Of a DNA stretch of 64,000 nucleotides, positions 43,806-56,224 are shown in pieces. Below the pieces are notes generated by a model that saw only the letters and a list, made by a program, of their open reading frames with translations, was not told where the DNA came from and searched no databases. The translations under genes and the position numbers were made by a program. Position 1 is the stretch's first letter, and each line of letters starts with the position of its first letter. This stretch comes from Octopus sinensis (lineage: Eukaryota): positions 26,722,001 through 26,786,000 of the forward strand of contig NC_042998.1 in assembly GCF_006345805.1 (NCBI RefSeq). Direction: 5' to 3'.

Positions 43806-44258
43806 AATGCATTTTTTACATGGTGCCAGTGCCCACAGTGTTGCTATGTGGCTTGCAAGACATGGACATCTCAACTGAGAGAGAGGATCCTGCGTGAAAA
43901 TAAACGATGTTAAGATTTTGATATCATTAAATATCAAATATTAAAATACTGGCAGTTAATTAGTGAAAGTTATAGTGTTGGTGTTTGGTGATGGAAGGAG
44001 TTGCTGAAACATGAAATGACCAAAGCAATTAATTAAAAAGCGACAGCTGAATGAAAGGAAGTATCATGATGAATGACTTAAAAGTGATATCAGATCTATA
44101 AAGGGGCAATGTGCTTGATAGGAGTGCAAAGATATCATTGACACAGGAAGATCAAATATAACCAGTGAAAAGAAATTAAATTCTAGGTGTCTTTCCAGGA
44201 TGTAATCCACCAGAAGAGAATTTATGTAAAATAAATGTATTTGTTTTCCTAAATAAAT

Positions 44259-44367
44259 TGCACTTCATATTCAAGGCTCTGATGAAGCTTATAAAGTGTT
44301 ACTCAGGCACACAACGATGAGTCCATTGCATCTTATAGCAGAAACAGCTGTAAGTCAATGGAGTGCA
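44259..44367 (+). ncRNA. Type I hammerhead-like motif with palindromic stem III
   Basis: TGCACTTCA..GGCT-CTGATGA-A-GCTTATAA..TTATAGC-A-GAAAC-AGCT-GTA^AGTC..TGGAGTGCA. Confidence 0.72.
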
Positions 44368-44493
44368 TAAGATGATTGTTTGTTCATTTGTCATCTCATT
44401 TTCTGATATGTGTGTGTGGTGTGTGTGCGTGTGTGTATATATGTATGTAAGTATATGTGTGTGTGTGTGTGTGTATATATATATATATATATA

Positions 44494-45058
44494 TTGGGTT
44501 GCCTGGAAAGTTTGTGCCGATTTATAGTAGCTTACTTTTGACTTATTTTAGAACATGGTTGAGTCCATAAAATAAGATTTGACTACACCTCCATTTAGAG
44601 CACAGTTTATGCTATCTTTTCATGGAAGAAGGTGTATGTTTCTATAACCTGTGTTAATTCTGCAACCCTTTAAAATGAAAGATAAGAAAGTTCATTTTTG
44701 GCACTTGATGCTTAGGGAACGAGACAAAAATTGCTGCAGCTTGGCTGGGATGTGTTACCCCACCCTCCATATTCACCAGATATTGCTTCTTCAGATTTCC
44801 ACTTATTCAGGTCTCAGCAGAATAGTTTTAATGGTAAAAATTTCAATTCCTTGGATGAAGTAATAAGATACATTGATGATTTCTTTGCCATGAAACCACC
44901 TCAATTCTGGGGAAGAGGGTATTTTCAAGTTAAAGGAAAGATGGAGATGCATTGTGCAACAAAATGGTTCATATTTGGTTGATTAAAAATGTAATGGCAA
45001 GTATTTATTGACCTTTTCTTTCCTTTAAAAATCGGCACAAACTTTCTGGACAACCCAA
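44494..45058 (+). mobile_element. Internally deleted mariner
   Basis: TA-flanked TIRs TTGGGTTGCCTGGAAAGTTTGTGCCGATTT; transposase N-terminus MKDKKVHFWHLML fused to LGWDVLPHPPYSPDIASSDFHLF. Confidence 0.95.
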
Positions 45059-45949
45059 TATTTACATACATATATATATGTATATATATATATATATATA
45101 TATATGTATATATATATATATATATATATATATATGTATATATATATATATATATATAATATATATATAATTATATATATATATATGTATATATATATAT
45201 ATGTGTATGTGTATATATATATATATATATATATATATATATGTATATATTATATATATATATATATATATATATGTGTATGTGTGTATATATATATATA
45301 TATATATATATATATAATATATATATATATATATATATATGTTAATAAAATAGAACATATGCATATATATAAACATATATGTACGTACCTACCTCTACAT
45401 GTACATATACACGCATATATGTGTACAGGACACCAAAAGGACGTCGAACACATAGAGAGACGAAAAACATAGACACAAACCAAGGAACAGGACAAGCAAA
45501 AAAGAAAAAAAGAGATACAGGACAATAAGCACAACGAAAAATCCCCTTCTTCAGTCGCTAAGGTTTCATCTACTCTACGTTTCGAAGGATAAAAGCGAGA
45601 CGTATACTTCGAAGAAACTTCCTTCCTGCGAAAAGCAAATCAATTAAAATTCTGAGATCTTTTCGCAGAGGGGTAAAAAATGGTAAAAAAAGCAAGATGG
45701 TAACGACAGTACAAACATATAAACAGTAAAAAAAAAAAAAAAATTATATATAAACAGTTGAAAAATAAATATATAACAGTGAGAGACAGGACAAGGAGAA
45801 CAAGATAAGAAGGGCTGTTTACGCCAGACGAAAAAAGTAATGCAAACGCTGGATTATAGTGGACGACGAGAGAGAAAGAATGTCGACCAGTGGCCTTAGA
45901 AGGCGGGCGAGAAAAGACAGGATAGCAGTTACGACGGAAGTATCGTATA

Positions 45950-47036
45950 TATATATATATATATTATATATATATATATATATATATATATATATGTATA
46001 TGTATATATATATATGTATATATATATATATGTATATATATGTATATATGTATAGATATATGTATATATATATATATATGTATATATATATATATATGTA
46101 TAATATATATGTATATATATATATATATATTATATATATAATATGTATATATATATATATATGTATATATGTATTAATATATATATGTATATATGTATAT
46201 ATTATATATAATATATATATATGTATATTATAGATATATATATAATGTATATATATATATATATATATCTGTATATATATATATATATAATATATGTATA
46301 TATATATATATATGTATATATATATATATGTATATATATATATATATATATATATATGTGTATAATATATATATATATATATATATATATATATAATATG
46401 TGTATATATATAATATATATATATATATATATATGTGTATATATATATATATATAATATATATATATATATATGTATATATATATATATATTATATATAT
46501 ATATATATATATATATATGTATATATATGTATATAATATATATATATTATATATATGTATATAATATATATATATTATATGTATATATATATATATATAT
46601 ATATATATATATATGTATATATAGATATATATATATATATGTATATATATATGTATATATTATATATATATTATATATATATATTGTGTATATATATATA
46701 TATATATATGTGTATATATATATATATATATATATATGTATATATATATATATGTGTATATATATATATATATATGGTGTATATATATATATATATGTGT
46801 GTATATATATATATATGGTGTATATATATATATATGTGTGTATATATATATATATATATGTGTATATATATATATTATGTGTATATATATATATGTGTAT
46901 ATATATATATATGTGTATATATATATATATATATGTGTGTATATGTATATATATATATGTGTATATGTATATATATATATGTGTATATGTATATATATAT
47001 ATTATGTATATATATATATATATATATATATATATC
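45950..47036. repeat. About 1.1-kb (TA)n/(TATG)n array
   Basis: Directly visible. Confidence 0.95.
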
Positions 47037-53659: not shown

Positions 53660-53915
53660 TTTACACAATGGACAGAATGCTTTGCAGTAGTATCTGTTCT
53701 GGTTTTTGAATTCTGACATCAACTTCTGCGATAATGCTGGTGCCATGCTGTATCAGCTTTGCCATTTCCTTGGATGTCATCAGTGGTGTGGAAACAGAAG
53801 ACTTATATGCCTGAGCAATTGTTTGTCTTCAATACAACAACCTTGTCTAAGACTATTCTTTGGAGAGAAATTTTCATGGTGCAGAAATCGATGGCCATTT
53901 ATGGCTAAAGGAGAA
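53660..53915 (+). pseudogene. Possible pogo/Tigger transposase relic
   Basis: Frameshifted FA.S..WF, SADNAGA, TYMPEQLFVFNTTTL..KSMAIYG resembles Tigger YLPEQVFNxDETxL..KSMPGFK. Confidence 0.35.
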
Positions 53916-54120
53916 TTAAACTAAATTAGCAAGAATTAAACTAAATATTAGACCAGACTTTTCACTAAACACTCAGGTAAAGTGTTTCACAACCAATTGT
54001 TTTAATAATCCCTCTTAATTAATTATGATAGTTCAACAAAATGGAAGGCTACATAGGATGCTGTTTATTTTTGTCCCAGATCATCCTCAGCATGACCCTG
54101 CCATCTTTTACTCAGATATA

Positions 54121-54685
54121 TTGGGTTGTCCAGAAAGTTCGTGCCGATTTTTAAAGGAAAGAAAAAGGTCAATAAATACTTGCCATTACATTTTTAATCA
54201 ACCAGATATGAACCATTTTGTTGCACAATGCGTCTCCATCTTTCCTTTAACTTGAAAATACCCACATCCCAGAATTGAGGTGGTTTCATGGCAAAGAATT
54301 CATCAAGGTATCTTTTTACGTCATCCAAGGAATTGAAATTTTTACCATTAAGACTATTCTGCAGAGACCTGAATAAGTGGAAATCTAAAGAAGCAATATC
54401 TGGTGAACATGGAGAGTGGGGTAACACATCCCAGCCAAGCAGCAGCAATTTTTGTCTGGTTCTCAAAGCATCAAGTGCCAAAAATGAACTTTCTTATCTT
54501 CTATTTTAAAGTGTTACAGAATTAACACAGGTTATATGAACATAAACCTTCTTACACAAAAAGATAGCTTAAACTGTGCTCTAAATTGAGGTGTAGTCAA
54601 ATCCTATTTTATGGACTCAACCATGTTCTAAAATAAGTCAAAAGTAAGCTACTATAAATCGGCATAAACTTTCCGGACAACCCAA
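54121..54685 (-). mobile_element. Internally deleted mariner, same family and deletion as 44494
   Basis: TIRs; ORF 54194-54481 LGWDVLPHSPCSPDIASLDFHLF..NGSYLVD. Confidence 0.95.
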
Positions 54686-55167
54686 CATATATATATACAC
54701 ACACACACATATCAGAAAATGAGATGACAAATAAATAAACAATCATCTTATGAACTCCATTAGCTTACAGCTGTTTCTGCTATAATATGCAATGGACTCA
54801 TGGTTGTGTGCCTGAGCTCCATCAGTGCCTTGAATATGAAGTGCAATTTATTTAGGAAAAGAATTACATTTATTTTACATAAATTCTCTTCTGGAAAAAC
54901 AGCTAGAATTTGATTTCTTTTCACTGGTTATATTTGATCTTCCTGTGTCAATGATATCTTTGTACTCCTATCAAGCACATTGCCCCTTTATAGATCTGAT
55001 ATCACTTTTAAGTCATTTCATGTTTCAGCAACTCCTTCCATCACCAAACACCAACACTATAACTTTCACTAATTAACTGCCAGTATTTTAATATTTAATA
55101 TTTAATGATATCAAAATCTGAACATCGTTTATTTTCAAGCAGGATCCTCTCTCAGTTGAGACGTCCA

Positions 55168-55220
55168 TAAGTTGAAAGGTAAGCTACTATAAATCGGCAC
55201 GAACTTTCCGGACAACCCAA
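55168..55220 (-). mobile_element. Extra mariner left end
   Basis: AAGCTACTATAAATCGGCACGAACTTTCCGGACAACCCAA followed by TA. Confidence 0.9.
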
Positions 55221-56224
55221 TATTTTATTCACAACTAAATGATCCAATATATTCTTTCTCTTTAACCCTTTATCATTTAAACCAACCATATCCGCCAAAA
55301 ATACTCTACCTGTTTTATTTTCAAACTGGCTAGATCCAGCCTCTCACACCTACCTTACAATAATATTCTAACAATAAACAATCGTGACATTGAATTCTCA
55401 AAGATACAAGATAAGGCATAACTAATTCAAATCAATGTGAATAAAAAAGCATTGCATCTGACATGGAAATCTGAATACTAAAGGCTGATGGCTTACTAAA
55501 TGATTTTGAGGGATATTTTGTCTGCTTCTTTTAGCAGGCTAAACAATTATGCAAAAACTCTCTCACTGACTTGGCAAAAATATATACATTCATTTTCACA
55601 ACAATGGGAGAAATACAAGTTCAAGTTTAGCCTAAAGATTCAATTTAGCGCAAGAAGTCACAACTTATTATTTGAGAGTCAAACATCTTTTTCATTCACC
55701 TACTTTAACTCTATGGTAAATTATATTAGAAGCATTGCAAATCATCCAAACAGGCTAAAGGTTCGGGAGATATGACGGTTGAAATTACCATAATTCCACA
55801 ATAATTTTCATAGTCATTCATAAAACTCACAAAACTTGATACAACTATTTACTTTAGGAACAAAAGTAAATTTGAATTCTATGATGAAGGCTATTCTAAA
55901 AGTGAAGCCTATTGAAAAATTTATTTATATAATAAATTCATAGAATGAATGCAATAAACAGGTTGGTACACTATATACATTTGAATGAAGACAATGGGGT
56001 TGTTAATATCCCGAGGATGTTATTTCAAGTAGATTAAGACATAGAAATTCATTTGTGACTGGAATTTCTATCTATATTCTCTTGACAGGTAATCACATGG
56101 AAGAAGAGAGAGAGAGGGATAGAGGGGGAGGGGGGGAGAGAATCAGACAGACTCTCTGACAAATACATAGACAGAGGAAAAGGTGGAGCAGATGGAGGTG
56201 GAGTGTAAAACAGTGTGTGTGTAT

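Follow-up and report, generated by a model that had tools for sequence, protein, structure and literature searches.

In a 64,000-nucleotide stretch of Octopus sinensis DNA (contig NC_042998.1, positions 26,722,001 to 26,786,000; hereafter the window) we found a mariner-derived composite of 1,100 bp that possesses three mariner ends, carries terminal inverted repeats (TIRs) with an adjoining TA at both borders, and encloses a copy of host DNA whose parental segment lies 9 kb away on the same chromosome. The donor is copy 1, in which this host segment directly adjoins a mariner of the same family. We consider it probable that the composite, which consists of copy 2 and an additional mariner end, was formed in place by gap filling, when a mariner resident at the second site (site 2) was broken and subsequently repaired from copy 1. 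The features are compiled in Table 1.

Table 1. Coordinates of the donor region, the composite and the hammerhead-like motif within the window.
Feature	Position	Strand	Remark
Parental unique flank, 556 bp	43863-44418	+	aligns to 55167-54700
Hammerhead-like motif, unsupported as ribozyme	44279-44352	+	
(TG)n(TA)n microsatellite directly left of mariner copy 1	44419-44493	+	ends in target TA 44492-44493
Mariner copy 1, 565-bp internal-deletion derivative	44494-45058	+	TIR scan, relatives, protein homology
Left and right TIR of copy 1	44494-44523; 45029-45058	+	TIR scan
Target TA (45059-45060), then TA-rich microsatellite of ~2 kb	45059-47035	.	
TA bordering the right end of the composite	54119-54120	.	
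Inner mariner of copy 2	54121-54685	-	same deletion derivative, 94% identical to copy 1
Transposase C-terminal ORF remnant, 95 aa	54194-54481		inside inner mariner of copy 2
Remainder of the microsatellite, 14 bp	54686-54699	-	75 bp in copy 1
Captured flank copy, 468 bp	54700-55167	-	after 57-, 15-, 14- and 2-bp deletions
Outer mariner left end, 53 bp	55168-55220	-	meets flank copy at AT/GGAC
TA bordering the left end of the composite	55221-55222	.	

Alignment within the window showed that 43863-45058 on the plus strand matches 55167-54121 on the minus strand with 55 substitutions in 1046 aligned columns (5.3%; 30 transitions and 25 transversions). BLAST between the copies gave E = 0 for the mariner part and E = 3e-166 for the flank. 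The inverted recurrence that the initial annotation had placed at 43861-45058 and 54121-55168 is thus real. The extra left end that had been assigned to copy 2 only is indeed there as well; it shows 88-91% identity to the inner left ends. Its claimed absence from copy 1 is borne out by the five TIR matches in the window and by the fact that nothing aligns upstream of 43863. The TA dinucleotides that had been reported on both sides of the composite are present, and the alignment contains all three of the microhomology-bounded deletions described for copy 2, namely 57 bp bounded by AATGAC, 15 bp by CCAG and 14 bp by CT. Additionally, the microsatellite of copy 2 is 61 bp shorter and a further 2 bp (GA) are lost. 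Runs of N are absent from the window, and no tRNA genes were found in it. A larger collinear inverted duplication was considered and rejected: the pairs 47949-48254 / 56333-56658 and 51854-51972 / 56226-56344 do not run collinearly with the main pair and belong to dispersed SINE-like repeats. We note that a composite that had transposed by hopping locally would also be expected this close (9 kb), which speaks against an origin in place.

For the identity of the element, both hallmarks of a mariner of the Tc1/mariner superfamily were found, a TA target-site duplication (44492-93 / 45059-60 in copy 1) and TIRs of about 30 bp. Scanning the whole window with a 30-nt TIR pattern derived from the outer left end of the composite, we obtained the five matches with at most 3 mismatches, where 0 are expected. 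In metagenome contigs the same TIR bounds elements of 1236-1295 bp. Mapping onto full-length relatives of 1236-1283 bp showed that copy 1 retains roughly 229 bp from the left portion together with the terminal ~336 bp, the part that codes for the C-terminus of the transposase. The metagenomes yielded 120 loci with the mariner TIR probe; these stem from another host and have 67-69% internal identity, and at none of them was a match to the flank seen. Only the C-terminal ~95 aa of the transposase survive, while the region with the first two Asp residues of the DD34D motif is deleted. This fragment shows 58-69% identity to proteins labelled SETMAR or Ammar1 transposase; a Pfam search with the fragment itself gave no match, and its longer homologues carry PF01359. 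The right TIRs of both inner elements share CCAG, whereas left ends and distant relatives have CCGG, showing that the two inner elements are siblings. At three positions the outer left end departs from the two inner ones, as it might if it came from another mariner copy, but these positions cluster within 12 nt of the junction and could be pre-existing differences, junction-associated errors or later mutations.

The assignment of copy 1 as donor, already made in the initial annotation, is supported by two features. The TG/TA microsatellite is present on both sides of the copy 1 mariner, but in copy 2 only inside the unit. Because the microsatellite continues for ~2 kb on its far side, copy 1 must have inserted within it, and the homology between the copies ends exactly at the right TIR. 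Furthermore, every indel of at least 14 bp is a loss in copy 2. Since the donor is still present 9 kb away, the polarity can be read directly. Divergence amounts to 4.1% in the flank and 6.0% in the mariner (Fisher p = 0.16); this uniformity is consistent with one event. Different ages of flank and mariner, as expected for a mosaic origin, were rejected because the difference is not significant, and a patch of low divergence at 43915-44171 failed a scan-statistic permutation (p about 0.1).

The junction between the captured flank and the outer end reads ...CTTTCAACTTAT/GGACGTC in the product (the slash marks the join), compared to ...CTTGCAAGACAT/GGACATC in the flank and ...CTTTTGACTTAT/TTTAG in the mariner left end. 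Flank and left end are joined at a perfect 2-bp AT microhomology, which is embedded in an imperfect in-register match of 8/12 positions. At positions -8 and -7 the product has CA as in the flank, not TG as in the mariner, a mosaic of the kind expected when heteroduplex is repaired after imperfect annealing. The earlier proposal of template switching is likewise supported, with the composite arising by synthesis during repair or replication and a junction at microhomology.

From the anatomy, the donor polarity and this junction we infer the following course. Site 2 would already have held a mariner between TA 54119-20 and TA 55221-22, which was probably sibling to the deletion derivative of 565 bp in copy 1 (44494-45058). 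In this resident element a double-strand break may have arisen through element excision or through breakage ~53 bp from the left end, and would have been mended by synthesis-dependent strand annealing with the paralogous copy 9 kb away as ectopic template. Repair synthesis would have entered via the mariner homology, proceeded leftward beyond the left end of the template across the microsatellite and the unique host flank of 556 bp (together about 630 bp), and halted at 43863, where the new strand was presumably joined to the 53-bp left-end stub at the AT microhomology. The deletions between short repeats in copy 2 may reflect slippage during repair synthesis of low processivity, or later events. 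In the terms of Tan et al. 2021 (Nat Commun 12:4280, PMC8277862) the composite would accordingly be a single-copy Pack-TIR made by gap filling, and not a composite shown to transpose. The earlier designation as a transducing, Pack-type mariner therefore stands for the TIR-bounded capture, but not for the mobilisation, since the evidence fits formation in place at an occupied site.

The same product could have been generated without a two-ended double-strand break by replicative template switching (FoSTeS/MMBIR) inside the resident mariner. The inverted orientation and the short distance suit switching among nearby forks or strands, the exit junction shows microhomology, and for the majority of single-copy Pack-TIRs Tan et al. 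favour transposition-independent breaks inside transposable elements (TEs). However, the capture has on one side a long stretch of mariner homology, typical of homologous strand invasion. Sequence alone does not tell this route from synthesis-dependent strand annealing after a break; we rate it as unlikely. True Pack-mariner transposition is a slightly better, albeit still rather unlikely, explanation. Here a chimera of left-end stub, flank and deleted mariner would have formed at or near copy 1, for example when a stalled fork switched template on the sister chromatid. A transposase acting on the right end and the outer left end would then have excised it, and it would have inserted anew at another TA at a distance of 9 kb, in accordance with the FoSTeST model described by Tan et al. 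(PMC8277862). Both ends of the composite look intact, and the outer left TIR fits the 30-nt pattern without mismatch, although this match is circular because the scan pattern came from that very end. TA flanks both sides of the composite, which is explained equally well by an original simple insertion. Mariners tend toward local reinsertion, in line with the short distance. However, the window contains no donor with the outer end, copy 1 lacks it, and there is just one composite in 64 kb. In addition, the multicopy or transposed Pack-TIRs of Tan et al. lie distal to their parents and the single-copy ones close.

Two further readings are much less probable. That the composite is ancestral, in which case the "flank" would be the interior of a larger element and copy 1 would have lost its outer left end by deletion, is very unlikely. 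In its favour, the flank is without known identity, but the copy 1 mariner sits in microsatellite on both sides, with ~2 kb on its right, which transposition could not bring; moreover, the homology of copy 2 stops exactly at the right TIR, and the flank is confined to two occurrences in the window and was not matched in JGI metagenomes by a 28-nt probe. Even more improbable is that the structure reflects misassembly, or a plain segmental duplication with ends that fall at TIRs by chance. While the region is rich in repeats and a 2-kb TA microsatellite separates the copies, these differ by 5.3% and several indels and are inverted, the assembly there is free of gaps, and one border coincides to the base with a TIR end and the other with a fragment of such an end, with a TA after each. 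Gap filling in place at site 2 is the reading that we prefer.

The captured flank itself (43863-44418) is non-coding, its longest open frame having 66 codons. BLAST found it at the two sites only within the window; the 28-nt probe of the JGI metagenomes was an exact one, and an exact-protein look-up of two ORFs of the window likewise returned no match. The initial annotation had claimed a hammerhead ribozyme in this flank. Copy 1 indeed contains CUGAUGA ... GAAAC AGCU GUA at 44279-44352, with a helix I of 4 bp, a helix III of 2 bp and a helix II that has a 54-nt insert and an A-A closing mismatch. The Rfam hammerhead models, however, matched neither copy at the gathering score nor at E ≤ 10. 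In the predicted minimum-free-energy fold of the single sequence GAAAC lies in a hairpin loop and no three-way junction is formed. Copy 2 reads CUGAUGG, a core change of A9 to G, and its 14-bp deletion takes one strand of helix II, so that the motif is lost there. A loose hammerhead descriptor found only this site and nothing in 200 shuffles; having been written after the site was seen, it is not independent evidence. We therefore do not uphold the ribozyme. Type I hammerheads with a minimal helix III, as known from metazoan repeats and retrozymes, share with copy 1 the ordered CUGAUGA, GAAAC, palindromic AGCU loop and GUA. Unlike them, the motif of copy 1 lacks covariance-model support, a hammerhead fold and a tandem repeat context, and it is destroyed in copy 2.

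Because neither a gene nor a supported ribozyme is carried, the biological impact is probably nil, and the composite leaves the knowledge of the mechanism unchanged. What it offers is a clean, base-resolved case of a cut-and-paste transposon acquiring host DNA, on one side by element homology and on the other by a 2-bp microhomology. It is improbable that the three-ended composite is or once was mobilisable, with further copies in the genome, and represents a nascent Pack-mariner or MITE family; such a family would have been born by homology-guided read-through into the flank of a paralogue. No second composite was present within the 64-kb window.

Among the known systems, transduction or end bypass (P element, Helitron, L1 3' transduction) and composite transposons likewise place adjacent host DNA inside a TIR-bounded unit. 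In end bypass the outer boundary is a cryptic end located in the donor's flank. The outer 53 bp of the composite, by contrast, are a genuine mariner left end with no counterpart at 43862 in copy 1, which rules out a cryptic flank end, and end-bypass transduction was rejected. Closer are the Tc1/mariner deletion derivatives and MITEs of Yang et al. 2013 (PMC3814204), for which abortive gap repair, template switching and MMEJ are the accepted origin. They belong to the same superfamily and share internal deletions, mismatched microhomology junctions and template switching in synthesis-dependent strand annealing, but the switches there occur within the element, whereas the synthesis proposed for site 2 would have run out of the template element into host flank. 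Closest are the Pack-TIRs. The initial annotation had regarded flank capture as little known for animal mariners; it is not rare, as Tan et al. list 115 Pack-TcMariner cases in animals, most of them single-copy, and the process proposed for site 2, gap filling that yields single-copy Pack-TIRs, has been described in animals before. As in a Pack-TIR, a TIR element with a target-site duplication encloses a duplicated non-TE segment whose parental copy lies elsewhere, and the TA flanks are retained. The parent is in cis and less than 15 kb away (56.9% of the cases of Tan et al. lie within 15 kb of the parent), the breakpoint microhomology is 2 bp (their median is also 2 bp), and the composite is single-copy as far as visible. 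It differs from them in that the parental segment is contiguous with a mariner of the same family, so that one side of the capture was guided by homology: the filler entered via several hundred bp of it and brings a second left TIR. Tan et al. state that their pipeline retained a Pack-TIR only where its parental copy has no association with a TIR TE; the parent here (43863-44493) abuts mariner copy 1. Cases with a parent beside a sibling element were thus filtered out and may be common, and the composite at site 2 illustrates this sub-type, which the main animal survey left out by design.

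Copy 1, which consists of a unique host flank, a microsatellite and a mariner, recurs in inverted orientation in copy 2, the composite at site 2, where 43863-45058 (+) corresponds to 55167-54121 (-) in a global alignment with 55 substitutions in 1046 aligned columns (5.3%; 30 transitions, 25 transversions). The recurrence described in the initial annotation is real and well resolved. Repeat detection joined 43879-45031 and 54149-55153 by five collinear inverted-repeat blocks, and BLAST within the window gave E-values of 0 (mariner part) and 3e-166 (flank), with no third flank copy in the 64 kb. 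There are no N runs in the window. The TIR scan with a 30-nt mariner pattern gave five occurrences versus 0 expected. We also found the extra outer mariner left end that had been claimed for copy 2, with TA beside both composite ends, while TIR scan and alignment upstream of 43863 gave neither a TIR nor any resemblance to copy 2, confirming that copy 1 has no outer TIR. The three deletions previously listed for copy 2 are present (57 bp bounded by AATGAC repeats, 15 bp bounded by CCAG repeats, 14 bp bounded by CT); in addition, its microsatellite is contracted by 61 bp and a GA (2 bp) is lost. The features are collected in the table.

Coordinates of the two copies and their mariner ends
Feature	Coordinates	Strand or source
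Copy 1, unique flank	43863-44418	+
Copy 1, 75-bp (TG)n(TA)n microsatellite between flank and mariner		
Copy 1, mariner	44494-45058, then TA + ~2 kb TA-rich microsatellite (45058-47035)	
Copy 1, mariner TIRs	44494-44523 (+), 45029-45058 (-)	TIR pattern scan
Copy 2, TA at outer left side	55222-21	read on - strand
Copy 2, 53-bp mariner left end	55220-55168	-
Solitary left end TIR	55191-55220 (-)	TIR pattern scan
Copy 2, flank duplicate	55167-54700	-
Copy 2, 14-bp microsatellite remnant	54699-54686	-
Copy 2, 565-bp inner mariner	54685-54121	-
Copy 2, inner TIRs	54121-54150 (+), 54656-54685 (-)	TIR pattern scan
Copy 2, TA at right side	54120-19	read on - strand

Divergence along the unit is statistically homogeneous, as expected of a single event. 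The flank stretch 43915-44171 differs from 55117-54918 by only 1-2 substitutions in ~200 aligned bases, compared with ~6% elsewhere; this is not significant once scanning is corrected for (p ~0.1), and later gene conversion of one inverted copy by the other is a possible cause. The long microsatellite into which mariner copy 1 is inserted is an imperfect (TA)n/(TG)n tract, and the GC content falls to 0.19 in the bin 46001-48000. A SINE-like copy at 43511-43805 (-), adjoined by a 26-nt tandem array (43417-43500), ends ~55 bp upstream of the start of the homology. Its family has a tRNA-like head, in which ARAGORN called no tRNA, with further copies at 48654-48971 (+) and 33071-33267.

The ORF at 54194-54481 (-) encodes 95 aa that match, at 58-69% identity, the C-terminal ends of annotated mariner-type transposases (SETMAR-labelled hymenopteran proteins and Ammar1). 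PF01359 is carried by its longer homologues; the 95-aa tail alone, a short fragment, gave no Pfam match. A TIR pattern scan of JGI metagenome contigs (Ga0157362-Ga0157367) yielded 120 loci (L001-L120), at which 1236-1295-bp elements flanked by TA and numerous ~121-bp MITEs have the TIR in common. This TIR is near-identical to the window TIR; internal identity is only 67-69%, showing that the JGI elements belong to another, unrelated host, in which full-length copies exist alongside the MITE family. Mapped onto these relatives, the window element retains ~229 bp at the left, where the 5' UTR is followed by the first ~13 codons (MKDKKVHFWHLML), and the last ~336 bp at the right; it is thus an internal-deletion derivative missing ~700 bp. 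The internal deletion is identical in both window copies. Because CCAG is common to both right TIRs, with CCGG in the left ends and in distant relatives, the two inner elements would be siblings.

The polarity of the duplication follows from the microsatellite. Mariner copy 1 has microsatellite on either side, copy 2 only between its inner left TIR and the flank duplicate; the right TIR is where the homology of copy 2 to copy 1 stops, exact to the base. Judged from this arrangement, the flank-microsatellite-mariner block is native to the copy-1 locus. Every indel of at least 14 bp is a loss in copy 2, which agrees with the earlier assignment of copy 1 as donor. We rejected the reverse reading, a composite at copy 1 that lost its outer end, since the microsatellite beyond copy 1 would then need an independent origin.

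At the outer junction, the product reads ...GCTTACCTTTCAACTTAT|GGACGTC, the donor flank in register ...GTGGCTTGCAAGACAT|GGACATC, and both inner mariner left ends ...GCTTACTTTTGACTTAT|TTTAGAA. A perfect 2-bp microhomology (AT) within an 8/12 match marks the crossover; at -8/-7 the product has CA as in the flank, where mariner has TG. The outer left end differs from the inferred inner left end at four positions, three of them at most 12-13 nt from the junction and the fourth at a CpG. This clustering would fit annealing at imperfect microhomology with patchy mismatch correction; alternatively, the differences may represent a pre-existing family variant. The donor lacks the outer end, a true mariner left end, and this rules out end-bypass, in which a cryptic flank end would have been used.

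Anatomy, polarity and junction are demonstrated by the sequence; for the resident element, the type of break and the pathway, we infer the following. A sibling of the 565-bp derivative would already have been inserted at the site-2 TA, where a double-strand break arose by excision or near element position ~53. Repair synthesis, after invasion via mariner homology, would have been templated by the mariner copy 9 kb away, left this template at its left end and crossed ~630 bp of donor flank, and the newly copied flank would have been end-joined to the 53-bp left-end stub. A ready-made composite may instead have transposed into site 2 (FoSTeST-like), or a purely replicative template switch may have occurred there. 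Resident mariner, break and read-through repair would be the simplest history, and the repair-type mechanism initially suggested holds.

The initial annotation had also placed a hammerhead in the flank. In copy 1, CUGAUGA (44279-85) is followed by GAAAC, AGCU as a loop and GUA, the order of a hammerhead, with a helix I of 4 bp and a helix III of 2 bp, and a descriptor, made after the site had been seen, matched once compared with 0 in 200 shuffles. However, with 1.3-1.6 kb searched and the threshold relaxed to E<=10, Rfam returned no hammerhead for copy 1 or copy 2. An A-A mismatch would have to close helix II, itself a 54-nt insert; the predicted folds form an 8-bp hairpin whose loop holds GAAAC, and copy 2 reads CUGAUGG with one helix II strand gone. 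This contrary evidence outweighs the motif order, leaving the ribozyme unsupported.

The only match at Rfam gathering score in the window is a U6 snRNA at 51938-52034 (region 51887-52087, +; 44.6 bits), convincing only over the U6 3' half (ATGGCCCCTGCACAAGAATGACATGCAAATTGGTGAAGCATTCCATATTTTTT). A ~50-bp SINE-like segment (...GCAGTCAAATGACTGAAACAAGTAAAAGA) flanks this match as one direct copy on each side, so the match resembles a chimeric U6/SINE retro-insertion rather than a U6 gene. The ORF 25346-27886 (+) encodes an intact 846-aa reverse transcriptase of a non-LTR retrotransposon (Pfam RVT_1, E=7.5e-30). Among named relatives the closest is from Argonauta hians (58% identity), which would suit an octopod-like host; the best unnamed relative reaches 73%. 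The translation of the ORF 5848-7029 (-), 393 aa, resembles the 846-aa protein by eye only, without alignment. A 42-bp tandem repeat at 49737-49994 (6.1 copies, 92% matches) has several open frames.

Neither mobilisation nor gene content nor a ribozyme is demonstrated for the composite, and the capture process itself is already known. Among 370 Pack-TIRs, 115 of them TcMariner, Tan et al. 2021 (PMC8277862) inferred gap filling for most single-copy animal cases, with the parent <15 kb away in 56.9% and a median microhomology of 2 bp; the route inferred here is likewise gap filling. The proposed history also matches the scheme of abortive gap repair, template switch and MMEJ proposed for Tc1/mariner derivatives (PMC3814204). 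The sole distinctive feature is that the parent adjoins a same-family element, a configuration filtered from the survey of Tan et al. (PMC8277862), and thereby the capture became homology-guided at one of its two sides and its product three-ended.
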